Shown: positions 12,176 through 64,000, counted from the stretch's first letter. The stretch is DNA of 64,000 bases from Selaginella moellendorffii (GCF_000143415.4 NW_003314295.1:569764-633763), one strand, 5' to 3'. The notes: generated by a model not told the origin, from the sequence alone. Numbers and translations are program-made.

Positions 12176-13038
12176 ATGCCCTTATCTTTTGGGAGTTACT
12201 CTCCTCGCCATAGTACACTGGGATTTGGAGCTCTCAAAGCGGACAGGCAAGTTAGAAGTACCAGAACTAGAAAGTTTCATGCCAGGGTTGCGACTGGAGA
12301 ATCTCAAGGTAAATTTTCACTCGTATAGAAATTCTAGAAAGCTTTCTTTCACAATCGTTCGGATAGCAAAGTCGAGGAGAGCGTTTTGGTGCTAAAGGCC
12401 GCTGCCAAGAGCAAGAAAATCCCAGCTCCAGAGGTGTTTGCAGCATTTAGAGTTTTGGAGAAAGCTTGCGTGGATCCATCCAATTTTTTTGAGACTTTGG
12501 GGGGAAGTAGTGGAGCTGAGCCAAGGTGCTGGATGCTTGTCTTTGCTGCTGGAGCCAAAGTGGTAAGAAAACTTGTCATAAATTTGGAACTTTGCTCTTA
12601 TATTTTGGTTTTCATTTGAAGGTGAGAGAAGCTTTGAAAGGTGGTTCTAGAGGTCAATGCCACTGTAAGTTCCCAAAAAATTTCATCGTTTCCAGACAAA
12701 GAGCATACAAAATGGGCTTTACTTTGGCCGTCTTGGCGTGTTGGAATTCACTTTTGGGTAGCCAGCCAATAAAGGCTTTTTTATTAAATAATTACCAAAA
12801 AAAGTGTACCATATATAATATTAGAATATTACATTTAGCAAATAAATTTTTCTTTTAATCTTTTTGGTGCTCGTGGTTATCCTTCAAGGTTGGGCCTCTT
12901 GGCCCCTTCCAATTCGCAATTAGCAAGAAAAAAGAGCTGGGTCAAGAACCTGGAGAAAAAGATCCCTTCTTCATTTGGTTCTCTACACGGACAAAGAAAT
13001 TGATTGCTATGAGGGTGCGTTGCAATGAAAGAGTTTGA
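12176..13038 (+). pseudogene. Pseudogene of a conserved plastid-targeted protein (At1g18060-like family, from memory)
   Basis: Exons encode VLKAAAKSKKIPAPEVFAAFRVLEKACVDPSNFFETLGG..RCWMLVF, KSIQNGLYFGRLG and FKVGPLGPFQF..EKDPFFIWF. Lesions: acceptor AG>GG at 12361-12362, missing YFP..QRFD block, AT-rich interruption about 12755-12880, 2-nt frameshift after WF. Confidence 0.7.
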
Positions 13039-13994
13039 ACTTCAGCCGCCATTGTTTAATATGGTAATATTTAACCATTACTTGTAAAGGTTTTTATAAT
13101 CAATCTGTTTATTTTTAGCCTCATAAATTTGATCTTATCTCTTTGTCCTATTTTAATTCTTTACTGATCCATTGATATAAAATTTGAAAATGTTAGCATT
13201 TGAAACTAAATGCTGTGAAATCCTGCTCTTTACAACAAATTGAAATAGACATTGATAAATCATTTTAGTTTTTAATTTCAACTCAATATTATACTTTATA
13301 TCTCATATAAAGATAATTCACAAGAAAATTTTACATTGGCATATTGTGTATTTCTACTAATTATCCTATACTATTACCTAACCTTCTTTTGTATTGTGGT
13401 CACCCAAATCACATACAATTTGAAATAGACATAAAATACATTTTAAATAGCATCACTATTATTCATTATTCTCACATAAATTTAACTTTATTGTATTCCA
13501 TCTTTTTTCATTGAATGCTCTTCTGATATAATATTATTAAAAATAAAATTTTACTAAAGAAACTTGGCAAGATAAATGTACTCTTTAAGTATGTGTTTAT
13601 TTAAGATTTTCACCTTTGCACAAGTATCATAATTAACGTTTTTGGCTTTGAGGTTTCTATAGTTTATTTGTCTTCATTTTGTTGTAAAAAGTTAAAACAT
13701 TATTGAAAGATTAACAATTAAAGCTTCCATTACTAAACTATTTTTTACTTCTATTTACAAATCATAAAATCTAAAATCTCCATTAACTTTTATATGTTTC
13801 AAAGTTCTATTAAATCTCATTTTATAACCACATAGAGTAATTATAGTGTATTATATTATTGTTAAGTTATTATAAATGGTTTACCATCTTCAAATTTTTG
13901 CTTATCAAAACATTTTATTTTATTTTTTCCGAAGTAAAAGATTCAAAGTGATCAGCAATGGTTGCTCTAATTTATCGGTTCTAACAAAATCAGT

Positions 13995-16781
13995 CTAAGC
14001 TCCTCTCAATTTGACCCCAGGAGTAAAGCCTCTGGTGCTGAAAGTCATGCCATTGTCCGAAAGCTTCTGGATTCGCGCGGATAGTTCCGCAGCCTGGAAA
14101 TAAAAATCAATCTAGGCATCGAGTCGAAAACCTGAGATAAACCTTTTCATCAATCCAAACGAGTGAAGTTAGTTGGTTGTTGAGAATTCTCACGACCAAG
14201 TCGAGTGGACTAGCATTTTCAATCATATGTATGTCCCCACCCTAGCAAACAACAAAATCATCATTGCCTCGATCAAAACTTGTCAAACTCTCTAGTACCT
14301 GACTCGCATTGATATTCTCCACGGTTTCCTTGATCTGCTCACCCATTCGAGTCAGTTCTCTTTCGATGAATTCTGCTTGCTCAAACCTGCAAGAGAAGAA
14401 ACGAAAGAAATCAGCTAAACATCTCTCCACGCAGAAAGAACACTTACATTGTATCTCTAGTTGCTGTGGCTTCGTCCTCAAGAACGAGTCCTCGCTCGTC
14501 CTTGTAGAGCCGTTCAGCCTCTTCTTCTATACTTTCAAGAGCTTTCTCGACCTGATAACAATTGCAGCCAAGTAGGACATCTACGAGTTAGATTGTTGGG
14601 AATCCTTTTACCTCTTGCTGATGTGTTTCTATAAGTTCTAGTTGGCGCTCCAGCCCATGCTGTGACTCCACGACTTTTGCAACTTCACTCTGAGAAGAAA
14701 AGACGGGTTAAAGACAACACTCTCGCCAAAATCTCATTTACCTCGAGCTTTATGAGCACATTCCTGTTGCTGATAATCCGCCGATCCCACTCCCCAAGTG
14801 CCTCAGCCTGTTTACGAAGCTTGGCCGTCCGCTCTTGAAGTTCGTACGTCCATTCTTTTATAATCTGATTTACAAACTGTTAGCTGCTCAGAGTAATGTA
14901 ATAGCACACCTCTTCCACAGTTTTTCCAACAATCTCTGATGGGAACTTGGGAGTCTTTTCAGCCGTCGGGGTCCTGCGAAAGCATTCCTCCATATTATTG
15001 CTAAACAACATGAAAATGAGCAAGCTCACGCAGAGGCTGCTGGTGTCGATGCAGGTACTATAGAAGCTGACGTAGTTGTTGCCGCAGATGAAACAAGGAG
15101 ACCTCCGGAACCTCCCTGTGTTGTTGTTGCAGGCGTTGTCAACACTGGGAGTAGAATAACATGAAGAAAGACCGTCAACATTGTGAACAACAGAAGGATA
15201 TAGCGTACCCGCTTCAGTAGTTTTAGCAGTGGTTCCCAAAGATTGAGCTGCTGCTGGCGTTGCAAACGCGAACGGAGCTGCACTGGTTGTGGGCGGCTTT
15301 GAAGTGGAAGGAGCCGGCGTAGAAAAGATAGAAGGCGTCGAAGCTGGAGCTGGCGCCGATGCGGGAGGCGAAGCAGCAGAGCTTGCAAACAATGGAGATG
15401 CCGGTGACGCTGCAGCACTCGAACTAGCTGCGGCGGCTGGAGTGCTAAAGCTGAAAGACAGTGCTGGAGCGAGCGGCGTCGTAGCAGCAGGCTGGGGTTG
15501 AGTTGCTGAAGGTGCTACAAACGACAAAGACGGCGCCGCCGAAGAGCTCGTGTTCCCAAGGCTGAGCGTCGTGCTCGGGCTCGCAGACGACGAAGTAAAC
15601 GCCGGTGTGGACAGCGAGGCTGCAAATCCAGAGGACGAGCTCGTTCCAGTCAATGGCTTCTGGCCAAATCCCCCGAAACCGGCACTAGCTTGCGTCGTTG
15701 CTGGAGTAGACTGAGAGCCAGCGGAAGTGTTCCCAAACGAGAAGCCTTGAGAGGGTGGCGGAGTGGAAGAAGCAGTGGCGGTAGAGACTCCGAATCCAAA
15801 ACCCGAGGATGGAGGAGCCGACCACGAGGGCGACGAGGATGTAGCCGCCTGTGCCTGGCTCGAAAAGAGTGGCGCAGCCTGAGTGAAGGGCGACGTAGAA
15901 GCACTAGTGCTTGCTCCAAACCCGGGTGATGGGCTTCCAAAAGCACTCGCGCCAAATGCCGGAGCTGGGCTACTGCTGGCTCCAAACGCCGGCGCAGGAC
16001 TACTCCCGCTCGCTCCAAATGGGCTACTACTAGCTCCAAATGCCGGGGCTGGGCTAGTGCTGCTTGATCCAAACGGGCTACTCGCTCCAAATGCTGGAGA
16101 GCTGCTCGCTCCAAACGCCGGAGTGCTGGTCGCTCCAAATGCCGGAGTGCTGGTTGCTCCAAATGCCGAAGTGTTGCTAGCTCCAAATGCCGGAGTGCTG
16201 CTCGCTCCAAATGCCGGAGTGCTGCTCGCTCCAAATGCCGGAGTGCTGCTCGCTCCAAATGCCGGAGCGCTGGTCGCTCCAAAAGCCGGAGAGCTGCTCG
16301 CTCCAAATGCCGGAGAGCTGCCCGCTCCAAATGCCGGAGAGCTGGTCGCTCCAAATGCTGGCGCGGGAGAGCTGCTTGCTCCAAACGGGCTCGCTCCAAA
16401 TGCCGGCGCCGGACTGCTACTCGCTCCAAAAAATCCCGGCGATGGAGAGCTCCCTGCTCCAAATCCACTACTCGTCGCTGCTCCAAATCCCGGGGCCGGG
16501 CTAGTGCTGGCCCCAAATGGCGGGGTACCGGACCCAAATGCCGGAGACGCGCCAAACGCTGGTGTGGAGCTGCTGGACCCAAATGCCGGGCTGCTGCTGG
16601 CACCAAAGCTGGGCGTGGGAGTGGCGCTGCCGAAAGCCGGAGCCGAGGATGGAGTGGCGCCGAATCCAAACCCAAATGCGGGCTGTGACGCCGTGCTGCT
16701 GGCTGCTCCAAACGTGCCGAAGGAGAATCCCGTCGATGGCGTGCTGCTGCTGCTGGCGCCGAAGCCCGTGAAGCCCGCCAT
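13995..16781 (-). CDS. NUP62: Nuclear pore complex protein NUP62/Nsp1 (multi-exon)
   Basis: MAGFTGFG N-terminus with many PAFG/FG repeats; Nsp1_C-like exons KFPSEIVGKTVEE|IIKEW..., ELTRMGEQIKETVENINASQ, VRILNNQLTSLVWIDEK. Confidence 0.93.
16084..16360. repeat. 24-bp coding minisatellite (ASSTPAFG units) inside NUP62
   Basis: Tandem GCTCCAAATGCCGGAGTGCTGCTC-like units. Confidence 0.9.
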
Positions 16782-22232: not shown

Positions 22233-23827
22233 ATGTAAGTCAAGTCTTGGATTAACAACTCTCGTTTCTTCCCATTGCCAGGAAGAAATGCGTGGGCGCC
22301 ATAGAGCAAGCCCTGGATCGCGCCCGTCAGCTCCAGGAGCAGCAAGGGCTCGCGTCGAAGATCACGCAATGCACGGATCTGGCGCAAGCACAAACGCTCC
22401 TCGCCCAAGCAGCACAATCCGGCGTGGATCGCCTGGCCAGCGTGGGGAATCCATTGATCCAGATGTTTGGAGAGCTGGATAGAGTTTGTGAGGCGCGCGC
22501 GGCGTTTGACAGGCTGCAAGATCCTAGCGTTGTCTCGTGGAATGTGATGTTCACTGCGTATGCCCGGAATGGGCATCCAGAGAAGGCGAAGGAGCTGTTT
22601 GATCGGATGCCCGATCGCAGCGTGGTGTCCTGGAACGCGATGATTGGGCTTCTTGCGGGCATTGGCGATTCCCCAGGCGCGATGCAGGTGTTCCGGATGA
22701 TGAATCTCCACGGGGAGAGGCCAGTGAGGGCCACATTCCTCTCGGCGCTCGAGGCGATCGATGCTGCTGAGGCCAGATTCTTGCGCGCCGTCATCTTGGA
22801 GGCCGGGATGGAATCCAATGTCGCCGTTGGCACCGCGCTCGTCAAGTTCTTGAGCAAAGCCGAGAAGATCGACGAGGCCTGGGCTTTGTTCCTAGAAATG
22901 CCCAGCAAGAACATCGTCTCCTGGACCACGATGCTGGGAGCTCTTGCCCAGCACGGGAATCTGAGAGATTCGAAGGCCCTCTTCGATCGGATGCCGCAGG
23001 GTAACGCTGTTTCTTGGAACACATTGATCTGCGGGTATGCCCACGCGGGGCATAGCAGGGAGGCTCTAGGGATGTTCTTGGCGATGGATCTAGCGGGGAT
23101 GGAGCCCGATTGCGTCACGTTTGCTGCGGCCGTGGAAGCGTGCTCCCAGCTCTTGGATCTCGCCCAGGGCCGGAGAATTCACTCCGAGATCACTGCGGCA
23201 GGGATCATCTCCGAGGAACTGGGACTGGGAGTGGCCAACGCTCTCATCCATCTCTACGGGCGATGTGGGCGAATGGATCTCGCAAGGGCGTGCTTCGATC
23301 TCCTCATCCACGAGCGAATTCTTCGCTGCAATTCAATCCCCTGGACAAGCATCGTTGGACACTATGCCCGGAATGGGTATCCCGCGGAGGCGATGGAGCT
23401 CTTCCACGCCATGGCCGTGGAGGGTCTGAGCCAAACCCCTGTTCTCTTCATCAGCATGCTCTCCTCTTGCAGCCATGGCGGCAAGCTAGAAATCGCTCGC
23501 CGCCTCTTCCTCTCTATGATCCAAGACTATGGGCAGGATCCCACAATCGATCACTTCATGTGCATGCTCGATCTGCTAGCGAGAAATGGGAAGCTGGGCG
23601 ACGCGCAGGATCTCATCCAAGCTCTGGATCTCCAGTCGGAGGAATTGATCGCTTGGAGGACTCTAGTGGCAGCTTGCAAGAGCCACGGCGATCTCCCCCG
23701 CGGAAGAGGAGCTGTGGAGATGGCTATGGCGGCGGACGACGCCATGGCTGCTCCATACGTGATGCTCTCCGCCATGTATCGCGAGCAAGGAGTGGACGGC
23801 GGAGATGGCAACGAGCTTAGCCGTTGA
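22233..23827 (+). CDS. PLS-class PPR protein with E domain; start probably formed across intron 22235-22281
   Basis: P/L/S motifs, SCSHGG..., HFMCMLDLLARNG, WRTLVAACKSHGD, APYVMLSAMY. The start is inferred. Confidence 0.88.
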
Positions 23828-38391: not shown

Positions 38392-40923
38392 CTAACAGCG
38401 GCAAATATCGGACAAAAGGATGTATGGAGCTGACTTTGAAGGATCTATAGATTTCGCAACTTGTGCTCCACGACCAAAATCCCTGTGAAGTTTACACGAG
38501 CTCAAGAATGACCCAAAATCAATGCTCTCAGGAAGAACAGGCATAGATTTCAGGAGCTCCTCTGCCTGCCCAAGATGCCCAGCTCTCCCCAGCGCATCAA
38601 TTGTGGTACAATAGTGCTCCCTGCCTGGAGAGATGCTAAAGTCGCAAATCATTCTTGAAAAGAACAGTCGTCCAGTCTCGACCTGACCTGACTGGCTCCA
38701 GATCGAGAGAAGGGTCGTGAAAGCTACCTCGCTTGCGGTATGTCCTTCCACTTGCATCGAATGAAAGAGGTAAATGGCCTCCACACTGTGATGCCCAGTT
38801 TGGGCATATGCAGCAAGCATAGCGTTCCATGACACGCCATTCCTTTCGGGCAAAGCATCGAACATTTTCTTTGCTAGAGACGTAAGACCATTGTTTGAAA
38901 ATCCTGCAAGCATGGCATTCCACGTAATGGCATCTTTCGCGGGCGTAAGAAAAAACATGCGTTGCGCTTCTAAGAGATGCCCGTTTTGGGCATACGCCGT
39001 GATCATAGAGTTCCACGCCACGAGATTCTTTTCGGGAATGGACTCGAAGAGGAACCGCGCCTCCTCAAGCTGGGAGCTCTGGGAGAGGCTGGCAATGGTG
39101 GCATTGCACGAAACAAGGTCTCGCATTGGCATCTCGTCAAAGATGGCCTTGGCAAGGGATGGATTCCCGGCGTGGAGGTGGCCGACGATCATCGTCGTCC
39201 AGGACGACGCATCCCTGGCGACGATCGAGTGGAAGATCTGCGTGGCCTCGTCCATGCGCCCGGATTGAGCGTACGAGTACATGAGCGTGTTCCAAGACAC
39301 CACATTGGTCTCCTTGAGCCGCTGAAAGAGATCCACCACCTTATCCAATTGCCCTCTCTGGGAGTAGGCCGCGAGCATCGTGTTCCAGGACACGATATCG
39401 CGCTTCTCCATGCAATCAAACATCTCTCTCGCGGCGTCCAGATCGCCGCTATCGATGATCGCCTCTAGCATCACTGTGGAGGAGATCACGTCAACCTCCG
39501 GGACGGAATCGTAGAGCTGCCTGGCCTGATCGAGGTGGCCCTCTCGCGCGAGCGCTGGGATCATTGCATTGACCGCCACCGCGTTGTGTAAAGGCATGGA
39601 ATCGAAGATCGCGGCGGCGTCGCTGAGGCGGCCGTGATCTGCGTAGGCCTGGATCATCGCCGTGCATGGAACGATCCCGTGCTCCGGGATGGCAAGGAAG
39701 AGCTCTCTCGCGCGATCCAGATCGCCGTGCTGGGAATTCGCGGAGAGGAGGATGATCCAAGAGACGATGTCCCGCGAGGGCATTTGATGGAAGATCTGGT
39801 GAGCGTGGAGCAGCCTCCCACTTATCGCGTTTGCCTGAAGAACAGAGTTCCAAGAAACGATGTCCCACGCGGGCATCTGATCGAAGAGGCTGTTCGCCTC
39901 CACGAATTCCCCGTTCTGGCCGTATGCCGCGATGAGAGCGTTCCAGGAGATCACGCTCCACTGCGGCATGCGATCAAACATGAGCCTCATCTCTCGAAAG
40001 TCGCCCGCTTTCACGTAGCCATGGATCATTGCGTTCCAGGCTATGATGCTTTCCTCCGGCATAGCATCAAAGAGGGCCTTTGCGCTATCCACATCCCCTG
40101 CCTGACAGTACGCGCTCACCATCGCCGTCCACGACACTGCATCGCGCATTGGCATCGTATCGAACATCGACTTTGCCTGCTCCAGATCTCCAACGCTGGC
40201 ATTTGCTTGGATCAAGATGTTCCAAGAGAGAACACCGCGCTCGCTCATTCTAGAGAACAATTCTCTTGCCTCTTCAATCTTTCCATTTTCTACGAATCCT
40301 TGCAGCATAGCGTTCCAGCTGACCATGTTTCTTTGAGGCATACGGCTAAATACTTCTTTTGCTTGATCCAAATGCCCTATCCCGGCAAATGCTGAAAGCA
40401 TTGCGGTCCAAGAAACCACGTCCCTTTGAGGCATTGATCTGAACACATGACCAGCCTCTTCCACCATGTTGTTTGCAATATAGAGCTGAATAAGTGTGTT
40501 CCACGACGCAGTGTCTCTCCTAGGCATGTTGTCAAAGAGTGTTCTTGCCTCCTGTACGTACCCCTTTGTGGCATATGCTTGCATTAGCGTTGTCCATGCT
40601 ACAAGATCTTTGTGAGGGTTTATGTCGAAGAATTGCTTGGCTTGATCGAGAAGACCATTGCGGGTGTATGCATTGAGCATGATGTTCCATGAAAAGAGAT
40701 TAGGAGTGTCTATGCTGTCAAAAACTTTGCGAGCATCATCTACTGCCCCGCAACTCCCATACATTTGGATGACTTGGTTGAGCAGGAACAAGTTGGAACG
40801 GTGCGCACTCTTCAGGATTGATTTGTGGGCGAATCTACCTTGGATAATATCTCTTGACTGGGTGTGGAGCTTGATCTGTGCAGCTAAATTATTCTGCTCT
40901 TCAAAAGCTCTATCATTCAACAT
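38392..40923 (-). CDS. PLS-class PPR protein with a long S-motif array and E domain
   Basis: 843-aa intronless ORF with about 20 31-aa repeats; HYCTTIDALGRAG, SFLSSCKLH, APYILLS. Confidence 0.93.
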   Translation of the reverse strand: MLNDRAFEEQNNLAAQIKLHTQSRDIIQGRFAHKSILKSAHRSNLFLLNQVIQMYGSCGAVDDARKVFDSIDTPNLFSWNIMLNAYTRNGLLDQAKQFFDINPHKDLVAWTTLMQAYATKGYVQEARTLFDNMPRRDTASWNTLIQLYIANNMVEEAGHVFRSMPQRDVVSWTAMLSAFAGIGHLDQAKEVFSRMPQRNMVSWNAMLQGFVENGKIEEARELFSRMSERGVLSWNILIQANASVGDLEQAKSMFDTMPMRDAVSWTAMVSAYCQAGDVDSAKALFDAMPEESIIAWNAMIHGYVKAGDFREMRLMFDRMPQWSVISWNALIAAYGQNGEFVEANSLFDQMPAWDIVSWNSVLQANAISGRLLHAHQIFHQMPSRDIVSWIILLSANSQHGDLDRARELFLAIPEHGIVPCTAMIQAYADHGRLSDAAAIFDSMPLHNAVAVNAMIPALAREGHLDQARQLYDSVPEVDVISSTVMLEAIIDSGDLDAAREMFDCMEKRDIVSWNTMLAAYSQRGQLDKVVDLFQRLKETNVVSWNTLMYSYAQSGRMDEATQIFHSIVARDASSWTTMIVGHLHAGNPSLAKAIFDEMPMRDLVSCNATIASLSQSSQLEEARFLFESIPEKNLVAWNSMITAYAQNGHLLEAQRMFFLTPAKDAITWNAMLAGFSNNGLTSLAKKMFDALPERNGVSWNAMLAAYAQTGHHSVEAIYLFHSMQVEGHTASEVAFTTLLSIWSQSGQVETGRLFFSRMICDFSISPGREHYCTTIDALGRAGHLGQAEELLKSMPVLPESIDFGSFLSSCKLHRDFGRGAQVAKSIDPSKSAPYILLSDICRC

Positions 40924-41988
40924 GAGAGTCCTGGCAAATTGATCTTATGAGCTGCTTGAAGAAACAAAAAATAAGCGTGTTCTTCCTACTGCTTTAAGTT
41001 CTTAATACAAATGCACTCAAATATTTTAATATATTAATTTAATTGATGTAATTGTATATTTAAAGGCTAACATAAGATAAGTCTAGCAGTAATATATTAA
41101 CATAAATTTTAATACTATACATTTAATTTATTATACTTTTGGTAATAAACTTCAGTAAATAGAAAGTCTAAATATTTACTTTTTAAATTATTTTTTAATC
41201 ATATAATTTATATTAGATAAAAATTCATAAATTTCTATATAAGCAAAACAATATGAATAATTTCTATATGAGCATGTTTTCTGTGTCTATATATTATATT
41301 ACTACTTGTGTGCGGATGCTTATGAATGCTCATAAATTCATAATGCAATTAAAAGTAATCTATGATTTTTTTCTATTTTTATATGCATTAAGTGTAAAGT
41401 CAAGGTTTGTTCTTTTTATTTATAATTAAATTTTAGGTTCTCATGAGTTATATCAAAAGTAACATATGTAGATATTTTAGATTTTCATTTTTTTATGAGC
41501 AAACAAATATAAATATTTTAAATTTTCAGTAAATCATACTAAGAAGGAATATTTTTCAGACTCTAAGAACTTTATTATATTATAATTTTTAAAAATAAAC
41601 TATTTTAATTTTGAAACATAAATTCTTAAAAATATTCATAATAAATATATATAAATAAATAAATATTATTTTTATAAAAAAAATATTCATTACATGTTCT
41701 AGTATTGATTATATGATATGATATGATATGATTCAAATGATAAATATGATTAAAAGTGACTACTTTAATTTCCAAAAGTTTTGCTATTTGACTTCATCAC
41801 ATATGAAATACTCTTTCAAATATTTTGAAAACAAAATACTTTAAACCATGATAAAATATTTTTAGAGTATTTTTTTTAAGTTTGAATGGCTTTTATTATG
41901 TAATGTAGTACAATCTATATCTTTTTTATTTTGATGATATTTACAATTACTAAGAAAGTTTAGATGGAAATCATATTTTTTGAAAAAA

Positions 41989-44900
41989 CTAAGTTTTTCT
42001 TAAAGAGTTAATAAGTAAAGTATAAAAAGATGAAAATTTACATTTTTGCAAATCCATTTTAGATAAGATCTCTTTGTAACTACAGGCATGCATTGATAAC
42101 AATGATTGTGATGAAACCAGATTTGATATAGAAGGCATTGCAGCCATAAACTCCTCAGCATTTCGCAATTGTCCAGCCCTTGCTAAGACATCTATAAGTG
42201 CATTATAATGTTCCTTTAGAGAGCATATATGGTAGTCAAAGACCATTGTGTTGAANNNNNNNNNNNNNNNNNNNNNNNNNNNNNNNNNNNNNNNNNNNNN
42301 NNNNNNNNNNNNNNNNNNNNNNNNNNNNNNNNNNNNNNNNNNNNNNNNNNNNNNNNNNNNNNNNNNNNNNNNNNNNNNNNNNNNNNNNNNNNNNNNNNNN
42401 NNNNNNNNNNNNNNNNNNNNNNNNNNNNNNNNNNNNNNNNNNNNNNNNNNNNNNNNNNNNNNNNNNNNNNNNNNNNNNNNNNNNNNNNNNNNNNNNNNNN
42501 NNNNNNNNNNNNNNNNNNNNNNNNNNNNNNNNNNNNNNNNNNNNNNNNNNNNNNNNNNNNNNNNNNNNNNNNNNNNNNNNNNNNNNNNNNNNNNNNNNNN
42601 NNNNNNNNNNNNNNNNNNNNNNNNNNNNNNNNNNNNNNNNNNNNNNNNNNNNNNNNNNNNNNNNNNNNNNNNNNNNNNNNNNNNNNNNNNNNNNNNNNNN
42701 NNNNNNNNNNNNNNNNNNNNNNNNNNNNNNNNNNNNNNNNNNNNNNNNNNNNNNNNNNNNNNNNNNNNNNNNNNNNNNNNNNNNNNNNNNNNNNNNNNNN
42801 NNNNNNNNNNNNNNNNNNNNNNNNNNNNNNNNNNNNNNNNNNNNNNNNNNNNNNNNNNNNNNNNNNNNNNNNNNNNNNNNNNNNNNNNNNNNNNNNNNNN
42901 NNNNNNNNNNNNNNNNNNNNNNNNNNNNNNNNNNNNNNNNNNNNNNNNNNNNNNNNNNNNNNNNNNNNNNNNNNNNNNNNNNNNNNNNNNNNNNNNNNNN
43001 NNNNNNNNNNNNNNNNNNNNNNNNNNNNNNNNNNNNNNNNNNNNNNNNNNNNNNNNNNNNNNNNNNNNNNNNNNNNNNNNNNNNNNNNNNNNNNNNNNNN
43101 NNNNNNNNNNNNNNNNNNNNNNNNNNNNNNNNNNNNNNNNNNNNNNNNNNNNNNNNNNAGCTCTAAAGCTCTCGAGTGATTCCCAGAGCGTACATTGGCT
43201 GCTAGGAGAGTATTCCATGAAGTAGCGTTGATCTCTGGCATCTTGTCAAAGAAAAGCTTTGTTGCATCAATTCTGCTACCTTGGCTGTAGACCGTCAAGA
43301 TATGATTCCAAGATACCACATCTCGATTTGGCATGTCCAGAGAAAACAGTAGAGCTTCGTGTATTTGAGTTATTAGAGACAAAGCAAGGTTCCATGTTGT
43401 GAGAGTCTTCTCTGGCATGCTTTGGAACACATTAATAGCTGCTTCTACGTCACCCTTGAGCCCAAATGCGGTGATCATGGCGTTGCAAGACACTGCGTCT
43501 CTTTCAGGCAAACAATCAAATACTTCTTTTGATTTTTCTATATAGTCATTCTGAGCATATGCTGTGAGCATGGCAGTCGAGATGACAAGATCTTTATTTG
43601 GAATTTGATGGTACAAGTTCTTAGCTAGATCAATCTGGCCGCTCTTTGCAAACATGTTGATTACTAGATTGCATGAGGCTGGGTCATGATCGGGCATTCT
43701 TTGCTCGAAGATAAACTTTGCTTGGTTAAATTGTTCCTTTTTTATATAGGCTGCTAAAAGCGCAGTCCAAGCAACGAGATTGTGCTCTGGCATTGAATCA
43801 AAGAACACCTTTGCCTCACTATCGAGGTTTCCAAAATCCAGAAGAATTTGGAACATTGTAGTGTAGCTCGTAATATCTCGACAGATCATTTCCGAGAAGA
43901 GCGTTTTCGCTTGCTGGAGATGCCCACTTCGGGCATACCCCGAGAGCATCGCATTGCACGAAGCGGTGTCTCGCTCGGGCATAAGATCGAATAAGCTCAT
44001 GGCGCACTCCAGGCGGTCGCAGTCGATGTGGATTAGGATCATCGCCCTCCACGACGCTATATTCGTCATTGGCATGCTCCGGAAGAATGCTTCATGGCGA
44101 TGGAGCTCCGCGGCACTGCGTAGAGCCACATTCCATGCAAAGACGTCGCGAGTCCCCGGCATCGCGTGAAACATCTCGAGCGATTTCTCGACTGCGCCGT
44201 TCTGAGCGTACGCTTGGATCATCACACTCCACGAGACGACGGTCTTGTGGATCGTCTCGAGGAAGAACACGCGCTCGGCCTTTGCGATCTCGCCGGACTG
44301 CCCGAAACCCACGATCATAGAGTTGCAAGAGAGGACGTCGCGCTCGGGAATTCGCAAGAACAGGGCCTCCCCCGCGTCCATCTGTCCGTTGCTAGCAAAC
44401 GCCTGGATCATCGCGTTCCAGGACGCAAGCGATCGGGAGCGCATTCGATTAAAGATCGCTGCTGCCTCCGCAAGATCGCCCACCTGGGCATAGGCCGAGA
44501 TCATAGAGTTCCCAGAGATCGCGTCGTGCGCAGGCATTCGCTGGAAGATGTCCTCCGCAGCGCGGATATGCCCTTGTTGGGCATATGCCTGGATCATTGT
44601 GTTCCACGACACGGCGTTTCTCTCTGGCATTGTATCAAACACGGACTTTGCTTGATCAAGATCTTCACCGTCAGCGTACGCTTGGATCATCGTATTCCAT
44701 GACACTACGTTCTTCACAGGCATGGATTTAAAGAACTCTTCCACCTCCACAAAATGCCCAATTGTGGCATACAGTGTGAGCATCGTGTTCCAGGATACCA
44801 CATCTCGATTGGGCATTTTCGCAAAGATTTCTTTGGCTCGATCCACGTTTCTTTCAAGAGCGTAGATCTTGAGCATTGCAGTCCATGAGACAACGTCCGG

Positions 44901-45221
44901 ATCAGGCATCATCGCGAAGATCCTCTTTGCACCGTCAAGATGCCCGTTCTGGGAATACGCGACGAGCATCAGGTTCCAGGAGAATTGATTCGGCCGCGCG
45001 ATCGTGTCGAATGCCGCTCGCGCTTCCTCCAGGCATCCGCACCGGCCGTATGCCTGCACGATGAGGTTGGCCAGGTACCGGCTCTGGCAGTGCCGATTGC
45101 TGCTGGCGATGAGCTTGTGGAGATTTCTCGCGGCAGCGGCATCCGCGCAGCATTTGAGGCGCTCGGCGAGATCGTCTTCTTCGCATCGCGCTCTGGATCG
45201 ATCGAGAAGAGGCGCTTGCAT
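41989..45221 (-). CDS. PLS-class PPR protein spanning a 903-N gap; degenerate E domain
   Basis: NLIVQAYGRCG and S repeats to 43159; after the gap HYNALIDVLARAGQL...FYTLL. Continuity across the gap is inferred. Confidence 0.82.
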
Positions 45222-53147: not shown

Positions 53148-55326
53148 TCACGCCAAGCGCAGCGTCACAGCGCGCTTGTGGGCGTCCAGGCCTTCGACCT
53201 CGGCCATCATCGCCACGGACGGGCCGATCAAACCAAGCCCTTCGCGGCTCAGCGATTGTACGGTCATGTACTTGACGAACGAGTCCAGCGACACGCCGCC
53301 GTACATCCTAGCGTAGCCGTACGTCGGGAGGACGTGGTTTGTTCCACTCGCGTAGTCGCCAACGCTCTCGGGCGTCCACCTTCCCAAGAACACAGACCCT
53401 GCCAAGACGAAGAAAGAGAAAAACTTCCACTCAATCGCGAAGAATGTGCTATGCAAACCTGCGTTTTTTATGTGATCCAGCCAAGCCTCAGCGTCCTCAG
53501 CGTTGACAATGAGATGCTCCGGCGCGTAGACATTGGAGAACTTGCAAGCCTGGAAGAACCAAAGGAATGAATGAAAACTCTTATCTAGTTTTCTACGATC
53601 GCGTAAAGGCTGACTGACTGACCTCTGCCATGCCTCGAGCAACGACGATGAAGCTGTGACCCAGCGCGACCGACGCGATATCTCCCCGGGGAAGCTCCTG
53701 GCACTGCTTGTAAACTTGCTCTTCGATGGCCTCTAAGTCGACGCTGCCGACAGCCACGAGAACCACTTGGCTGTCCGGGCCGTGCTCCGCCTGTAAGTAC
53801 ACAAAGCGTTTCTAAGCAAAACAAAGCTAAAGCTTGACGAACCTGGGATAAGAGATCCGCAGCTACATGGATCGCATTTGCGTTTCTATCCGCGATGACA
53901 AGGACTTCCGAGGGCCCAGCAGGCATATCTATGGAGATCATAGACTCGCTATTCTATAGGATAGAAAAGCTTGAAAAACGGTAAACTAAGAAGGAAAATA
54001 TGCAACTTCGTACCTGTAGCAACATCTTCGCAGCAGTTACATACTGATTTCCAGGGCCTAGGATCTTGTCGACCTGTGGCAATATGGAGATGGAATGTCA
54101 ATCACGGAAGCTTCAACAACAAATTCTTACTTTTGGACAGGAATTAGTGCCCCATGCCATGGCAGCTACAGCCTAAACAGTTCCAAAGATGAGAACACGT
54201 AACAAAAGAGCATGAAGAGTGGAGTACCTGTGCTCCTCCAGCTTTTAGGATGTGAGTAGCTCCAGCTTTCTTAGCACAATATAAAACTTCCTGCGTGCTC
54301 CACTAAGCTTGACAACTTTTCGAGGAAAATAAAACACGTACCGGACATATTGAACCGTCCGACCGTGGTGGAGTCGCAAGAACAATCGTCTCACATCCGG
54401 CAATACCTGCGGGCTATTAATCTTGCAGCTTTAAGAAGAAAGATCAGTGAAAGACATGACGTACCACTGCTAGCATGAGCGCTGTTGATGGAAGAACAGC
54501 CGTTCCACCAGGGACGTAAAGCCCGACGGCGTCGATACTCCTCGCAACTCGCCGGCATTTAACTCCCTGGGTGGCAAAACAGCCGAGGAGTTAGCATTTA
54601 TCACACAAGCTCCAAGTTACCAGACTCGGATAGAGCACTGACGGGCATGGTTTCTACTTCAAGCTGTTGAGTCTTTCGCTGTGCAAGATGGAATTTGTAG
54701 ATGTTGTCGAAGGCCACATCAAATGCAGCTTGGACATCTGGATCGAGCTGCCAAAACGTGAATGAGACCATACTTTCTTTGCGGCTTTGCAGAAAGATAG
54801 ATCGAAAAGTTCTACCTTTGGATCTGGAAGGTCGGACACCCTTTCGACAATGTTGTCAAGCTCCACTCCATCGAATTTCTTGGTGTACCTGGAAAGCTCG
54901 CCAGCGAGAAGATATTAAAGGCACGAGCAAAGCGAAGAGAGGAAAAAAGAATGCTTACTTGATCACCGCTTCATCGCCAGAAAACCTCACATNNNNNNNN
55001 NNNNNNNNNNNNNNNNNNNNNNNNNNNNNNNNNNNNNNNNNNNNNNNNNNNNNNNNNNNNNNNNNNNNNNNNNNNNNNNNNNNNNNNNNNNNNNNNNNNN
55101 NNNNNNNNNNNNNNNNNNNNNNNNNNNNNNNNNNNNNNNNNNNNNNNNNNNNNNNNNNNNNNGGAGCTGCTGGTTCTCCACAGCTGAGAATCTCAGGCTC
55201 AAATTCCAGGAATGTGGAGAGAGATTTCCACTCACCCGTGCCGATCTTCGCCATTGCTACTGACACTCTCCTCGCGCACCTCGCATTCTCGATCAGCGTC
55301 ATGGACGGATGAGCAGCGGCCTTCAT
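53148..55326 (-). CDS. HDH: Histidinol dehydrogenase, plastid (multi-exon, gap at 54993-55162)
   Basis: [66 protein letters not shown]. Confidence 0.96.
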
Positions 55327-57285
55327 CGCCCTAGATCGTTGCTGAATTTGTCTAACGAAAAACCCTAAAGAAGGTTCTAGCTAAGTAACTAAAATAAACT
55401 ACAAAACTTTCAAACCCTGATAGGGCTGGGCATCACTTAAAGGAGGCAAACAATACACCCTGCTTTGCAAAACAGAAAACCTAAAACGAAAAGCAAGCAT
55501 GACAAAAGAAGATACGATGACTTTCCAAGGCTAATGGCTCAACATGTAATATTAGTTTTTTTTCATTTATTCTTTGCTAAAATAAAGTTTTTAATTAAAA
55601 AGCTTTTGTTTTTATAATAAAAGGACTTTCTTCTTTTTTCCATTAAAGAATTTCTTTGCTTTAAGGATATACCATAAATGCATTATTAAAACTTTGTTTA
55701 AGCATGAATAAAATTATTTGGCTTAACTTTAAAGGTTATAACTTTCTATATTGTATCATTTTTCAACTTGTTGTCAATAATAGATAAAAAAAAATTCATA
55801 AGTAAAAATTTGTAATATATCCAATCATCTTTTATTGTAAAGTCAATTTTGTAAATTTAATGAAATAATAATTTGAGTGATATTTTTTACTCAAAATTTA
55901 TACCAATATCTAAAAACATTTCAATGCAAATTACCTCTATTGTAGTTTCTAATTAAATTTTTTGTTAATGATACAATTTGATAGATATCTTTTTTCTCAA
56001 AGTTTATATATAGTGATTTTCAATTACATTTCTTTTTTATAATATATATTTCAAAATTCTAATTAATAAGTGAATTACTTCTATCAAATATTTTAGGTTA
56101 AATGTTTTAAAATTTAGTTAAAATCACAACCCTAAGTACTAAGATTGCATGCGAATATGATAATTAAGCCTTATAAATTTAGTCAATCACTCTCTTTACT
56201 TTAACATAATAGTTTTTATTTAATGTTTGCAAAAGTTTCATTTAATTGCTCATAAATAATTACATAAAGTAAAAAAGTTTAATCGCTATATCTTTTACCT
56301 TTAATGAAAAAGTACTATATAATTGGATATGAAGAAGATTGTAGATAGAATTTATGAGCATTATTCTTATCAAATTTTACTTTAAAGATATTAATGTTTT
56401 TTGCTTAATTAAGTATTTATATTGATGATTTTTAATAAATTATAAATTAATAGTAAATTAGTAAGATGCCTCAATCAAATTATTTATTTCCTCATTAGTA
56501 TGAGAAAGATTTCCACCCACATATCTATGAAATAACTAATTACCTTTATGAACGATAAGAAAACCTTAGAAAAAATAGGGCTTAACTATGCCAAAATATA
56601 AATTAAAAAATTAATAAAAGTTAAAATATTGACATTTCAACCCATATATCTATGAAATGTTTTTTATAAAAGTCAAAATATTGATTCACTTATCAAGTAT
56701 TAATTTTAAAAATACTTGATAAACACTCCTTAATTTTGAAAATTCACCTCAAAATGTTCGACAAGTTACTTAATCTCAGCTTGCATAATAGTATCATTAT
56801 GAAAAGCTATGTAAATTAAATGATATATAATATTTTTATCCTTCTATCCCATGATTTTACTTTACAAATAGTATATTTGAGCAAGTTCCTCCTTACATGC
56901 TAAATATATTATAGAATTTGACAATCAAATGTAACTCTATATAAAATTAAAATGAAATTAAATTATAACATATTAAATTAATTACCTTATTCTGCACTTC
57001 AACATCATGATTTTCCAATTTGATATGTGTTAAAAAGTCAATTCTTAAGAGTTATTATTTAGTTTTCATATGTTCTTATTTTTCACTAAAAGTTAAAACC
57101 CATGCAAGTGGAATACCATTTCCATAATAATAAAAAACAAACATAGTATACAATGGGACTTGTAAATTATCAAGGATTATTCACTTTAAAATAATGAAAA
57201 CTTTACTTTATAACAATTAATTCCAAAAGTTGCATCAAGACTCAACAATCCTATTTTTCCTGAATCATATACATACATAAAGGTC

Positions 57286-58446
57286 TCCGTCCATGATGCT
57301 GATCGAGAATGGGAGGTGCCCTGACGGGCATGGTTTCCACTTCAAGCTCTTGAGTTTTCCACTGTGCAAGAAATTTATAGATGTTGTCAAAGGCCACAGC
57401 AAATGCAGCTTGGACATCTGGATCGAGCTGCCAAAACGTGAATGAGATCGGACTCTTGCAACATAGAAAAGTTATAACTTTGGATCTGGAAGGTCTTTCA
57501 ACAATGTTGCCAAGCGAATTTCTTGGTGTATCTGGGAGCTCGCCAGCGAGAAGATATCAAAGGCACGAGAAAAGCGAAGAGACAAAAAATTGCCTACTTC
57601 ATCACAGGTTCATGCTTCTCCACAGCTGTGAATCTCAGGCTCAAATTCCAGGAATGTGGAGAGAGATGTCCTCTCACCCGTGCCGATCTTCGCTGGTGCT
57701 ACTGGCGCTCTCCTCGAGTCTGGTAACTTGGAGCTTGCGTGATAAATGCTTACTCCCCAGCTGTTCTGCCACCCAGGGAGTTAAATGCCGGCAAGTTGCG
57801 AGGATCGACGCTGCCGGGCTTTACGTTCCTGGATCAACAGCGCTTATGCTAGCAGTGGTACGTCATGTCTTTCACTGATCTTTCTTCTTAAAGCTGTCTT
57901 AATACCTGCGAGATTAATATCCCGCAGGTATTGCCGGATGTGAGACCATTGTTCTTGCAACTCCACCACGGTCAGACGGTTCAATCTGTCCGGTATGTGT
58001 TACTTTTTCTTTCCACGAAAAGTTTTCAAGCTTGATGGAGCAAGGAAGTTTTATATTGCACTAAAAAAGCTGGAGAAGCACAGGCACTTGAAAGTATTTT
58101 TTCTCTCTTGTTGCATATACTCATTTTTGGAACTGTTTAGGCCGTAGCTGCCATGCCATGAGGAACTCATTCCTGTCCAAAAGTAAGAACTGTTGGTGAC
58201 ACTTCCGTGACTGACATTCCATCTCCATATTGCCACAGGTTGACAAGATCCTGGGCCCTGGAAATCAGTATGTAACTGCTGCGAAGATGCTGCTACAGGT
58301 ATAAAGTTGCGTTTGCTTTTCTTACAGAATAGGGAGTCTATGATCTCCATAAATATGCCTGCTGGTCCCTCGGAAGTCCTTGTCATCGCGGATAAAAACG
58401 CGAATGCGATCCATGTAGGAGCTTCCCTGGGGAGTCGAGCGTCGCA
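57286..58446 (+). pseudogene. HDH pseudogene copy A (plus strand) with internal inversion at about 57321-57716
   Basis: Exon and intron sequence homologous to about 53670-55310, with many deletions; the segment 57321-57716 reads in the same orientation as 54638-55274. Confidence 0.9.
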
Positions 58447-58580
58447 ATAATAAAATAACTTACAATGAAAACAAAATTCTCATTTGGAAAAGGCAACTTT
58501 TTTTTAACTCCTTAACGTAAGGCAGAGTCATTCACTTGGGGAAACGAAGCCATCGGCATGAGGATTGGCCAACACCAGCA

Positions 58581-58945
58581 CTGAGAGTGGGCTGTTGGAA
58601 CATTCTAGGTTTTCTCGAAACCAAGGTGATAGCTTGAGCTGCTTAAATAGGTACGATATTGTCATCCTCATGGAAACTTGGGAAGCAGAAGATCGACAGT
58701 TCGGTGACTTAATACACTACCTGGGCAAATGACCGACAGACCGCATTGAACATTAGCCATTTACATCCACCGGGAATGGAACATCAAGATCCATTCAATC
58801 ACCCATGGCCCAGATGGACTCTTCACAGCTATAAAAGGTGTTGGACCAACATGGGGGGAAAATAGCATCCACAGATGATCAGTGGCTTGGTTCCACCTGT
58901 GTCAAATGACGATCACCTGATAGACCATGTCAGTGTTGACCTGCT
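58581..58945 (+). mobile_element. LINE (APE endonuclease) remnant
   Basis: LRVGCWNILG, YDIVILMETW and a GDL(N)-like motif with stops, matching the endonuclease motifs SWN..G / D...LQET / GDFN. Confidence 0.55.
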
Positions 58946-59339
58946 TCTTTGAGGAGACTAAGCACTACAAAGTCATTGCACATACATTTGTGATCCTTGT
59001 GCGAATTCACGCGCATGGGAGCCGAGGATCACGCCCTCAACCTCACAGGACACAAGCTCCTCACATTTGCCATGACAAATGAACTCTGTCTTCTTAAGGG
59101 TGCCATGAAATGACGGGGGTGACATGGAATGTGAGTTCCACGCCCAGCTCATGTTGCAGATTGGATGATGTACACGAAAATATTTTACCATCCACCTCAG
59201 GTCATATCAAAGGCTAGAGGCAAGTCATCTCAGCGAAAGGTGTTTTATGTATAATGGACTTGAACAGTTGGGGTAGTGGGTTTTTACACATTTAAAGGTA
59301 AGAATGCTCATTTAGGCTTGAGTTTTCTAAAAGATCCTA

Positions 59340-60010
59340 AAGAATATTCACCCGTTTGCATTTAGTTTGAGGATCAGATTTATGCTCGTTTGGCCCTTCC
59401 ACACCTACACTGTGTAAGGATGGCCCCAGCACTTTGCTTGGAAAGGGAACCAGAGTGTAGAAATACTGGAACGGGGGTCGACTTGTCTGGAAAGTGCTAC
59501 TGGATCTCTTTAATACACGGTTGCTCTGCCTCTTGGCTGATCTGGCATATATTACTCTAACAATCTATATGCATACTGTAAAAGCAGCTTATTCTTAGAA
59601 TCGACATCATTTAACCATCCTCAATTTTATGGTTGGAGCTTCCCAAACCAACTAAATTACTTGGCGATGGACCCAGAATAAATGCTGCTGGATTTGTGAT
59701 TTTCACAGGTGATATCTTTGTGGTGACAGCAAAATCCTTCTTTGTGGCAACTGCAGACAATTCAAAATCTTACTTGTTGAGGATGGATCCTACTAAAGGA
59801 TTTGTGGAGGAAGGTGTTTATCCTTGGCCTGGTACCGAGGAACCTATATGCATTATCTACGAGAACACAAATCTGGTTATGCACCACGAATTTCTGGCTT
59901 TTTATGACCAACAAACAAAGAATTGGAGGACCAACTCGATTCAACCGTGTTGTGCAATTCGAAACTGCAAGCCGAGTTTGATTTGTGCGTGAGTCTAGAT
60001 ATTCATAATC
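59340..60010 (+). pseudogene. Possible fragment of an F-box-associated beta-propeller gene
   Basis: 119-aa frame without a real start (LAFYDQQTKNW) and broken upstream frames; weak resemblance only. Confidence 0.25.
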
Positions 60011-60130
60011 ACAGTCTACTAATATCTACATACTACGAGGGCATCCCTTTACCAAGTGAGAGAAGTGTTCGGAGTTTAAAAACAAAGAAATTCTGCCTTA
60101 CTTTCATTGTGAGTTTTTCTATTATTATGG

Positions 60131-61208
60131 TATCTCCCCGGGGAAGCTCAGCTAAAGCTTCACGAACATGGATCGCACTCGCGTTTCTATCCGCAAACTT
60201 CCGAGGCTTTGGAGATCGGTATTCTGTAGGATAGAAAAGCAAAAGACGCAACTTAGCACCATCTTCGCAGCGATTTTCAGGGCCCAGGATCTTGTCAACC
60301 TATGGCAATATGGAGATGGGATGTCAATCACGGAAACGTCACCAACAGTTCTTACTTTTGGACAGGAATGAGTGCCCCATGCCATGGCAGCGGCCTAAAG
60401 ATGAGTATACGCAACAAAAAGAGTTTCAAGTACCTGTGCTTCTCTTTCTTAGCGCAATATAAAACTTCCTTTGCTCCATCAAGCTTGAAAACTTTTCGTG
60501 GAAAGAAAAACAAACACATACCGGCTTCGATCGACAATCGTCTCACATCCGGCAATACCTGCGGGCTATTAGTCTCGCAGCTTTAAGAAGAAAGATCAGT
60601 GAAAGACATGACGTACCACTGCTAGCATGAGCGCTGTTTTCAGGAACGTAAAGGCCGACGGCGTCAATACTCCTCGCCACTCGCCGGCATTCAACTCCCT
60701 GGGTGGCAAACAACCGAGGAGTTGGCATTTATCACACATGCTCCAAGTTACCGGACTCGGATACTTCAAGCTGTTTTCCGCTGTGCGAGATGAAATTTAT
60801 AGATGTTGTCAAAGGCCACATCAAAGGCAGCTTGGACATCTGGATCGAGCTGCCAAAACGTGAATGAGATCGGACTTTCTTTGCGGTTGCAGAAAGATAG
60901 ATCGAAAAGTTATACCTTTGGATCTGGAAGGTCGGACATTCTTTCGACAATGTTGTCTTCCATAGAATTTCTTGGTGTATCTGCAAAGCTCGCCAGCGAG
61001 ATGGTCTTAAAGGCACAAGAAAAGCAGCTTCATCGCCAGAAAATCTCATTTCAACTTTTGAAAGAAAAACTTGAAACGAGATTTTCTTCCTCAAGTGTGA
61101 TTTCTTTCTCACTGTTTTTAAAATGGAGCCCTTCATAGAATTTCCCGCTCAAATATCGCCGCTGCTATTCGCCCACCTCGCATTCTCGATCAGCGGTTGA
61201 GCAGTCAT
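60131..61208 (-). pseudogene. HDH pseudogene copy B (minus strand)
   Basis: Collinear with about 53680-55320 including introns ([13 protein letters not shown]), with frameshifting deletions. Confidence 0.9.
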
Positions 61209-61240
61209 ATTATTAGGGCTTTTTGTTAGGTCAGCCAGGC

Positions 61241-61851
61241 ATGGCGGAGGAGGAAGAGGATCCGTGGAGCGATGGCGATGGCGATGGTGGTGAAGGCCCT
61301 CGAGAATCCGAATGGCAGAGCAGGAATTTCCACACGGTAGTGTCACTCTTCCTTCGATTCGTTCGAGTTTCCGTTTGATCGAGCGCAGATTTTCTAGCTC
61401 GGATACCGCGATGGTCTCTTTGCTGGGAAAGAATCGTCGGCACAGAAGGGGTTCGACGCTGGATTCAAGGAGTCGGCTCCAGCCGGATTCGATTGGGGGA
61501 TTGCGAGAGGCATTACAAGGTCTTTCGGATCTTTGCTTTTTTTCTTCTTCTAGAGATTGTAACAACTTTGGTGTTTGTAGTGCTTTTGCGGCATTGTCAC
61601 CGAGGCATCAAGAGTTGCTGGCTCCGGACAAGAATGCGCGCGACGATCTAAAGTCTCTGCACGATTCCATCTCTGGTATTTCCTCCAACGATGCTTTGGC
61701 CTCGTACCACAGCCACCAAGTCCTACGAGACGAAACCTCCACCGTGGCTGACGTTGGTGTCTTGAGCTCTCAAGCCAAAGCAGCGGCAGACAAAGCTTCC
61801 ATAGCGTACGATGCTCTTCTACAAAATAGTCGATCCACCAATCTCAGGTAA
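61241..61851 (+). CDS. YAE1: YAE1-like protein (Yae1_N domain), 3 exons
   Basis: EWQSRNFHT|LGYRDGLFAGKESSAQKGFDAGFKES..GFDWGIARG. Confidence 0.85.
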
Positions 61852-62550
61852 AAACTTCTCAAGCCTGATCTCTTTATCGCTAAAGTGGCCAACTTCAGCG
61901 TGACGGAAGTTCCAAGAAGTTGACAGAACGAGATGGACACAAACATATTTGCGAAAAGTCTCGACGATCCGACACGAAAAGTAGCTAGGAAAGTTTCTCA
62001 AGACTTGAGTGGTTTTGGTGGACGAGAAGGCTGTTTTCGTGGACTTTTAGGTGGTTTTCTTCGGTGCGAAGAAGCTGGCTGCCATTCGCAAAGCTGGATT
62101 CCCCGGCAGCCACGCTGCTGCCGCGAAGAAACTATTTTTTGGAATTCCAAGTCTTTGTGCGGTGGCAACAGTGGACGCCGTGCTCATCGACACCAACACC
62201 GTCAACAGTGAAAGAAGCCTGGCGATGATCCTCTTTCCAAAGTACGAGCCAAGTCGACAAGGAATGTGTCGCGCACTTGCGCGGGTCAAACAGCGCACGG
62301 GGACCTTTGACACGGAGGACGGATCTTTGGCTTTGGACCGGGCTCCAACACCGCATCGCCCAACCAGTGTCGGGACTCGCCGAGTTCCCGTGCCGGCATC
62401 TTTGAACGGATCAAATCCATATCCAAAGCCCAGCCTCTTCCTTTTCTCGTCATTATCATAAAGGAAAAAAGAGAGAACCAGAAAGATCTGATAGATAGCT
62501 CCTGGCTAACATTCGCTTGTATAAGAGCACTTTCGCGCGCGCTGGGCGAG

Positions 62551-62950
62551 GCCGACGTGGCGGCGGGCTTTCCACGCGTGCGGCCACGTCGGCATAAAGG
62601 CGGAAAGCGCGCGGCGCGAGTCAATGAATGCGAGATGCTTCGTCGCGTGGACGCCGACGGCGACATATCTATCTATCTATCTCTGACACGTCACTTGGCC
62701 GCCCCGTAGTACGTGGACGTGTTCTCCTCCCTCCCTTTTGTTGCGTTGCGGGCTCCCGAGATTCGGATTACCTGGCTGTGGCTTGCCTGTCGTCCACGTC
62801 AGGCGATATGGCCATCCATCCCATCATCCGGCCCCCATGCGCCCATTGGTCTAGCGTGGGCTCGGCAAAAACGGTTGATGTGGATGATACTGCGCGCCAA
62901 AAGTCAGAATGTAAAACGTGCTCGATCGCATTTCATGCAGTGACGTGAAG
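62551..62950. promoter_or_regulatory. ABRE/G-box, CE3 and DRE-rich regulatory region
   Basis: ACGTGGC twice, ACGCGTG, GCCGAC three times, ACACGT, TACGTGG, CCACGTCA, TGACGTG. Confidence 0.5.
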
Positions 62951-64000
62951 TGCCAACTTTTTTTTTTTTGGACCCATTTCTTTCCCTTGCGGCCGTACAG
63001 TATTGGCATCTCAATCAAAGCAGTTGGTCACAACCATATCACGACCAAAACCCCCCCAAGAGAGAATTAGAAACGGGTTTTTGGCCACAAGAAAAAAATG
63101 AGACAAAATGTTTTGGTCATGCGCTTTTTTCGTTGCGTAGCGCCCGAAGTCTAGATGCCCGGTGGACCAGATGATGGATTGTTTTTTTTTCCTTGTGATG
63201 TGTGTGTGGTGTTCTAGAAGCCCGCAAGGCGAGAGGGGAGACCCCGCGTCTATTCTTCGCGAGCGTTGAGCTTCAAAGCAGTTGCCTGTGGGTGGGATTT
63301 TGGGCAAAATCAATTCAAGCCAATCGAGGTTGACACCAGGCACCGCCTTTGTCTGTGTCAACAAGCCCCATCTGGAAAATGGCACCAACCCTTTTCCCCC
63401 TTTCAAAGCTTTTGTGTGGCCGCGTACCACAAGCCCGAAAATGCTGCATGCGCCTCTCTTTCACACGGCAAAAACTACCAAGGATTAGATCCATAGGTCA
63501 CTGAATCTCGTTTCTTTTAAGATGAGATAGGATTAGATAAGGTTAAAGATCACGCCCATGACGTGTGGAGCGAGTGAATGGCCGCCACCTCCGCCACCTT
63601 TGAATCCCCCATTATAAATTTACAGCCAGCCCGTGTGTACTCTCCAACGCGGAGGAGTTTAAACAAAGAATATCCCGGGAAATATATTGCTGTGTCAGTC
63701 AAGGAGCTCTCTCTCTCAAGCAACGAGAAAGAAAAGAAAAGCCTCCCCCAACTCAAAAGCAAACCTAAAAGCTTATCCTCTTATCCTAAAACCGCCAGCC
63801 CGGCAGCAAGCAAATGGGGGGATGAGATCACAGCCAAGATCCCCATCGCGCATCCCCATCCCATCCCATACCACCACACTACCCATTGGATAAGGCCCCC
63901 CGGGCGTTTTTAAAACCCCTCGCACCGACGGCCACGATCGCCCCTGCCCCGGAATGCCCGGCACATCCGACGGCCGCGATGCGCCCCCGGAATGTCGTGC

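Follow-up and report, generated by a model that had tools for sequence, protein, structure and literature searches.

Two decayed histidinol dehydrogenase pseudogenes form an old inverted pair next to their parent gene in Selaginella moellendorffii

Organisation of the locus

We analysed a stretch of 64,000 nucleotides from Selaginella moellendorffii (GCF_000143415.4, NW_003314295.1:569764-633763), referred to here as the window, and all positions are counted from its first letter. The window is eukaryotic in character, with many short introns and several intronless PPR genes; for one intronless PPR ORF, the two top matches in a protein search were S. moellendorffii proteins, at 30-37% local identity. 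The features discussed below are collected in Table 1.

Table 1. Features of the HDH pseudogene locus and its immediate surroundings.
Feature	Position	Strand	Basis or remark
HDH (histidinol dehydrogenase), intact parent gene	53149-55326	-	Pfam PF00815 and exon reading
Assembly gap inside HDH, 170 N	54993-55162		Masks some 5' coding sequence
AT-rich (~20% GC) non-coding block, HDH start to copy A	55520-57280		1.75 kb
Copy A, non-processed HDH pseudogene fragment	57286-58440	+	Self-BLAST, three-way alignment
In-place inversion within copy A	57319-57712	-	Equivalent to HDH 55275-54635; not complementary to copy B
Inverted repeat proper, left arm	57715-58470	+	Self-BLAST, folding
Non-HDH flank of copy A, common to copy B	58441-58565	+	Three-way and flank alignments
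Unique spacer, would-be hairpin loop	58566-60034		CpG observed/expected 0.46
Non-HDH flank of copy B, common to copy A	60035-60130	-	Three-way and flank alignments
Inverted repeat proper, right arm	60102-60759	-	Self-BLAST, folding
Copy B, non-processed HDH pseudogene fragment	60131-61208	-	Self-BLAST, three-way alignment; HDH orientation
YAE1-like gene, 5' part	61241-61520	+	Exon 1 61241-61336; exon 2 from 61398

HDH carries out a housekeeping step in the synthesis of histidine. Pfam assigned two families in this region, PF00815 to HDH and PF09811 to the YAE1-like gene. Searched as single exons and open reading frames rather than as a joined spliced protein, HDH gave PF00815 matches on two ORF pieces (E=4.5e-42 and 7.3e-12). 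The gene has at least 12 exons separated by short GT-AG introns, and eleven of its GT-AG exons can be read in frame from just past the run of N to the stop codon. Copy B retains about 100 nt that are probably the counterpart of HDH coding sequence lying behind this gap. From 55163 to 64000 the assembly is free of gaps, so the inverted repeat described below is contained within one contiguous assembly piece.

From HDH to the YAE1-like gene, the window holds three HDH-derived segments in alternating orientation, namely HDH itself on the minus strand, copy A on the plus strand and copy B on the minus strand, with A and B placed tail to tail. HDH and copy A are separated by an AT-rich block in which neither ORFs nor repeats were found. 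The possibility that this block is a foreign insertion was considered and rejected; six similar blocks occur elsewhere in the window (seven in all), and the block therefore looks like a general feature of the genome.

On the other side of the pair, the second exon of the YAE1-like gene (61398-61520) matches the Pfam Yae1_N domain with E=1.1e-11. The gene stands head to head with copy B, the end of which is 32 bp away from the YAE1 ATG at 61241. This agrees with an earlier note on this DNA, which had placed YAE1 about 30 bp from copy B in that arrangement. The sequence directly upstream of YAE1 is pseudogene DNA.

Structure of the two copies

The copies were compared with HDH and with each other locally, by coordinates. 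In the self-BLAST, the main part of copy A (57707-58418, plus strand) is the reverse complement of HDH 54636-53863 (E=0), and its 5' tip (57286-57319) is the reverse complement of HDH 55309-55276; in all, copy A extends over the equivalent of HDH 55309 to 53863 plus a piece of the ELPRG exon, in the orientation opposite to HDH. The main part of copy B (61025-60254) matches HDH 54933-54017 in the same direction, also with E=0, and short HDH matches extend it to 61195 and 60131. Self-BLAST and repeat finding thus place the two copies as the earlier note had described them, with A on the plus strand and B on the minus strand, facing each other across a spacer of about 1.6 kb, and the coordinates and orientations given there were correct.

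The same note had copy A inverted relative to HDH. This holds for the main part and the 5' tip, both of which read on the plus strand, but not for the segment 57319-57712, which runs the same way as HDH and copy B. The segment is covered by two direct matches, 57318-57613 with HDH 54635-54974 and 57613-57716 with HDH 55171-55274. On both sides of it the plus-strand copy A resumes with nothing lost, and the right junction shows an ambiguous overlap of 10 bp. Since copy A is inverted in place over roughly its initial 400 bp, the stretch that is complementary between the copies comes to only ~750 nt per arm. The two arms match in inverted orientation with an E value of about 1e-150 and measure ~660-750 nt, in line with the ~700 bp of complementarity that had been anticipated.

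Neither copy can encode HDH. Copy A has two frameshifted exons, two stop codons (in two exons) and three altered splice sites, and it is truncated at the 3' end; copy B has five frameshifted exons, one stop codon, several lost splice sites and likewise a 3' truncation. Introns are present in both and align with 86-90% identity, which identifies A and B as duplicates made at the DNA level and not as retrocopies.

The three-way alignment of HDH, A and B defines the two ends of the duplicated material. Homology to HDH begins at approximately the HDH start codon in both copies, and no HDH upstream sequence is recognisable in either, so that copy B does not carry an HDH promoter. At the other end, the AIHV exon is followed in A and B alike by one right-hand junction in the ELPRG piece (HDH 53697); homology to HDH stops near 53675, about 20 nt beyond this junction, and gives way to a common non-HDH flank of ~100-125 bp containing AATAATA..ACAATGAAA..GTAAGGCAGA..TCACTTGG. 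The jump between these exons, the end of homology there and the continuation into one and the same flank had all been noticed before, and the three-way and flank alignments agree with that reading. On its left side the AIHV-to-ELPRG deletion ends at different points in A and B, with 16 nt of intron remaining in B; probably their shared progenitor had a smaller deletion, which was later extended in each copy. The spacer measures ~1.47 kb from flank to flank, or 1.63 kb if the arm ends given by BLAST are taken as its limits. It has no Pfam match, and no further copy of it was found in the 64-kb window.

Shared and private changes

Within the inverted-repeat part of the alignment, eight indel events, amounting to 80 bp, are common to A and B and absent from HDH. 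Six are deletions (74 bp) and two are insertions (6 bp), and two of the common deletions fall within conserved exons, one of 18 bp in the GGTAVLPST exon and one of 24 bp in the next-but-one exon. A further 16 indels are private to one copy: twelve deletions in B, and three deletions plus one insertion in A. The common indels, together with the shared deletion junction and the shared truncation point, indicate that A and B descend from a copy that had already been disabled and truncated. The junction, the truncation, the flank and the eight indels also uphold the proposal that one copy was made from the other, or both from one copy, by inverted duplication.

Substitutions were counted over 808 ungapped columns. 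HDH and copy A are 89.6% identical, HDH and copy B 91.5%, and A and B 89.6%; when indels are counted, the match between A and B is 74-78%. Of the sites that unite two sequences against the third, 34 group A and B, to the exclusion of HDH, 34 uniting HDH and A against B, and 49 uniting HDH and B against A. These star-like distances and site patterns show that the arms have been neither homogenised nor kept complementary. The arms are old, and they are no more alike mutually than each is to HDH. The Jukes-Cantor distance between them is ~0.11.

Origin of the inverted pair

We consider it probable that A and B are two decayed, non-processed HDH pseudogene fragments that arose through at least two local DNA rearrangements. 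In the first, a stretch of HDH reaching from approximately the start codon as far as the ELPRG exon would have been duplicated together with its introns, and the copy would have lost its function, acquiring an internal deletion of ~130-170 bp between AIHV and ELPRG, smaller exon deletions and a truncation against foreign DNA. In the second, this dead copy, along with ~100-125 bp of the foreign flank, would have been duplicated in inverted orientation, giving A on the plus strand and B on the minus strand. Independent decay would have followed, in the course of which B gained its 12 private deletions and the 5' 400 bp of A were flipped in place, through a junction showing microhomology of a few bases. 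What we show is how the pair is built, which lesions its copies share or hold privately, how far they have diverged and that they could fold; the order of these events, their origin in replication or repair and the lack of function we infer.

Alternating copies of this kind resemble the DUP-TRP/INV-DUP structures that are generated by template switching and are known from human genomic disorders. The likeness lies in the three alternating copies and in the microhomology of a few bases at the inversion junction inside A. Unlike such structures, however, the present arrangement contains lesions in A and B that are absent from HDH, which requires at least two events instead of one replication accident; a single-step inverted triplication was rejected on the same grounds.

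Seen in this way, the inverted repeat looks like a by-product of its rearrangement history, probably without a function. Duplicated pseudogenes that lie inverted to each other and decay with age are of a kind already known. The case shows duplication, inverted duplication and in-place inversion piling up in a compact plant genome, beside a gene with a housekeeping role.

Capacity of the pair to form a hairpin

The main alternative to a by-product is that the pair works as an endogenous hairpin-siRNA locus, in which a transcript running across both arms would fold back on itself and be diced. Such a transcript might start, for example, on the minus strand near the YAE1 promoter, and would be processed probably by a DCL4-type or DCL3-type enzyme. 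The resulting small RNAs could act in cis to silence the pseudogenes, in trans to reduce HDH mRNA, or in both ways. We regard this as unlikely on balance, although several properties of the pair speak for it.

One of these is the predicted structure. When the minus-strand RNA from 61208 to 57286 was folded, the arms paired with each other, as the earlier note had expected, through 591 predicted inter-arm pairs. The uninterrupted predicted helices reach 53, 50, 42, 40, 31 and 30 bp with G-U pairs counted; strict Watson-Crick pairing joins the arms without a break over 51, 40, 36, 26 and 24 nt. The arms (~660-750 nt) and the loop (~1.5-1.6 kb) also fall within the sizes used for inverted pseudogene pairs in rice, that is, a stem of more than 100 bp and a loop of less than 2 kb. 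Perfect matches of at least 21 nt to HDH exons remain in both copies, for instance of 36 and 28 nt in A and, in B, as 24-nt exonic parts of longer runs. HDH 54058-54023 and 53914-53887 are among these exonic match sites. According to these folding predictions, siRNA production from a read-through RNA is physically possible.

Precedent for a hairpin of this type comes from rice, where two inverted pseudogene pairs among 11,956 pseudogenes gave hairpin siRNAs (Guo et al. 2009, PMC2708354). The HDH pair resembles them in consisting of two pseudogenes of the same parent on opposite strands, within 2 kb of each other and with imperfect arms. One rice pair that does yield siRNAs has an arm identity of 83% and a loop of 1,283 nt (PMC2708354), and mismatched hairpin transgenes are reported to make RNAi more persistent (PMC9263138). 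On the other hand, small RNAs were mapped to the rice arms, whereas the HDH pair is known from its sequence; in addition, the HDH arms are longer (~750 nt) and bear many indels, and their parent gene is the immediate neighbour.

As to the enzymes, orthologs of DCL1, DCL3 and DCL4 have been reported in lycophytes, so that a 21-nt route is conceivable. As to a promoter, copy B abuts the start of YAE1, and divergent transcription into copy B is conceivable, although this is conjecture; against it, copy B brought no promoter of its own from HDH. The history of the arms also leans against a maintained function, given that they are not better conserved mutually than towards HDH and that they have accumulated 16 private indels. 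Finally, with HDH being a housekeeping gene, strong silencing should, on general grounds, be selected against.

A second comparison is with the PAI1-PAI4 locus of Arabidopsis (PMC3203196), where a gene for amino-acid biosynthesis has likewise been duplicated in inverted orientation and may affect its paralogs in trans. At PAI1-PAI4, which belongs to the tryptophan pathway, the arms are nearly identical, include a functional transcribed gene and act through DNA methylation (PMC3203196). In contrast, both arms of the HDH pair are dead and ~10% diverged, and B lacks CpG decay. The CpG observed/expected ratio, an indirect proxy for methylation, is 1.0 in B, 0.68 in A and 0.85 in HDH, and by the same indirect measure the lineage-specific excess of CpG substitutions is not significant in either A (p=0.12) or B (p=0.54). 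The ratio in B and the substitution spectra would argue against long-standing methylation of the PAI type, and this absence of a decay signature in B, indirect as the proxy is, weighs against an active hairpin locus as well. Repeat-induced or methylation-driven mutation was considered and rejected, the lineage-specific substitution spectra having no significant CpG excess. Moreover, S. moellendorffii has been reported to have no clear peak of 24-nt small RNAs and to be missing CHH methylation (PMC5569507); the scantness of both weakens the analogy with PAI, and it counts against a hairpin-siRNA locus in this host.

The pair also recalls the model in which MIRNA genes originate by inverted duplication (Allen et al. 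2004; PMC3237417), since its decaying foldback arms derive from the would-be target gene. Unlike the compact foldbacks of that model, the HDH pair has arms of ~750 nt and a loop of 1.5 kb, and nothing in it suggests a discrete miRNA/miRNA* duplex. When 52-64 kb was scanned against Rfam with a cutoff of E<=0.1, no known RNA family matched, known miRNA families included.

The most specific version of the hairpin reading, in which the pair would be transcribed from the region shared with YAE1 and diced to 21-nt siRNAs that tune HDH, we hold to be quite improbable. If it were true, a lycophyte with little 24-nt siRNA activity would be relying on an old pseudogene hairpin to set how much it has of an essential histidine-biosynthesis enzyme. 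More generally, should small RNAs from the arms act on HDH, a lycophyte case would join the few natural pseudogene hairpins that regulate their parent gene. Our preferred reading remains that of duplicated pseudogenes left behind by local rearrangement.

Transposon capture and misassembly

Long inverted arms around a unique centre, with outer ends that coincide with the ends of HDH homology, are also what a foldback or Pack-type DNA transposon would present if its long terminal inverted repeats had captured a fragment of HDH. This origin is, in our judgement, very improbable. The two outer ends, at 57286 and 61208, show no target-site duplication, sharing no word of 7 nt or more, and neither the arm flanks nor the spacer have a second copy elsewhere within the 64-kb window. 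The spacer is devoid of any transposase-like ORF as well as of Pfam matches, and the position of the parent gene, only 2 kb away, is a better fit to local duplication.

An assembly artefact, in which reads from one HDH locus, or from two haplotypes, were misjoined or misoriented, is very improbable too. Even though the assembly does have gaps, one of them within HDH, the pair sits in gap-free sequence. Moreover, a divergence of ~10% among the three copies, along with dozens of distinct indels, is much more than errors in reads or differences between alleles would produce. For annotation, the practical consequence is a warning that 57.3-61.2 kb contains pseudogenes and not genes.

Pseudogene copies of HDH

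The functional histidinol dehydrogenase gene (HDH) contains an assembly gap of 170 N (54993-55162), and the pseudogene copy B retains ~100 nt (61050-61150) that read MKGS..ISFQVF..VEMRFSGDEA on the minus strand. The exon hidden in HDH is probably the counterpart of this stretch, which could serve as a guide for filling the gap. Only 32 bp (61209-61240) separate the end of copy B from the start codon of the YAE1-like gene, YAE1, and therefore the 5' UTR and core promoter of YAE1 must overlap pseudogene DNA. Alternatively, copy B may occupy the ancestral head-to-head site of HDH and YAE1.

In copy A, the other pseudogene of the inverted pair, the 5' 400 bp (57319-57712) have been flipped in place. 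This inversion has clean breakpoints, with a microhomology-like ambiguous overlap of 10 bp at its right junction (57707-57716).

HDH (54426-54476), copy A (57846-57896) and copy B (60578-60628) share 51 nt without a single difference, covering the end of an exon and the greater part of a 51-nt intron; between HDH and copy B the identity extends to 62 nt. From the per-site identity, a run of this kind is estimated to arise ~0.04 times by chance, but it was chosen post hoc.

In the spacer between the arms of the inverted repeat (58566-60034) the CpG observed/expected ratio is only 0.46, far below the 0.68-1.18 of its neighbours; the spacer may have come from a transposon or be old methylated DNA. 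It contains an ORF of 119 aa (59633-59992) that matched nothing in Pfam.

AT-rich blocks and PPR ORFs

The 64-kb window also contains sharp AT-rich blocks with <30% GC (lowest ~20%), against ~46-50% in the genome, and four long intronless PPR ORFs. Neither ORFs nor repeats were found in the block that adjoins HDH.

AT-rich blocks and intronless PPR ORFs in the window
Feature	Position	Remark
AT-rich block	2101-4000	
AT-rich block	6001-7000	
AT-rich block	9501-9800	
AT-rich block	10801-11300	
AT-rich block	13001-14000	
AT-rich block	40901-42200	
AT-rich block	55401-57300	adjoins HDH
Intronless PPR ORF	388-2217	
Intronless PPR ORF	22292-23824	
Intronless PPR ORF	38392-40920	
Intronless PPR ORF	43159-45221	

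For the 842-aa PPR ORF, a large protein collection held no near-identical protein, the top matches being PPR proteins of Selaginella moellendorffii with 30-37% local identity.
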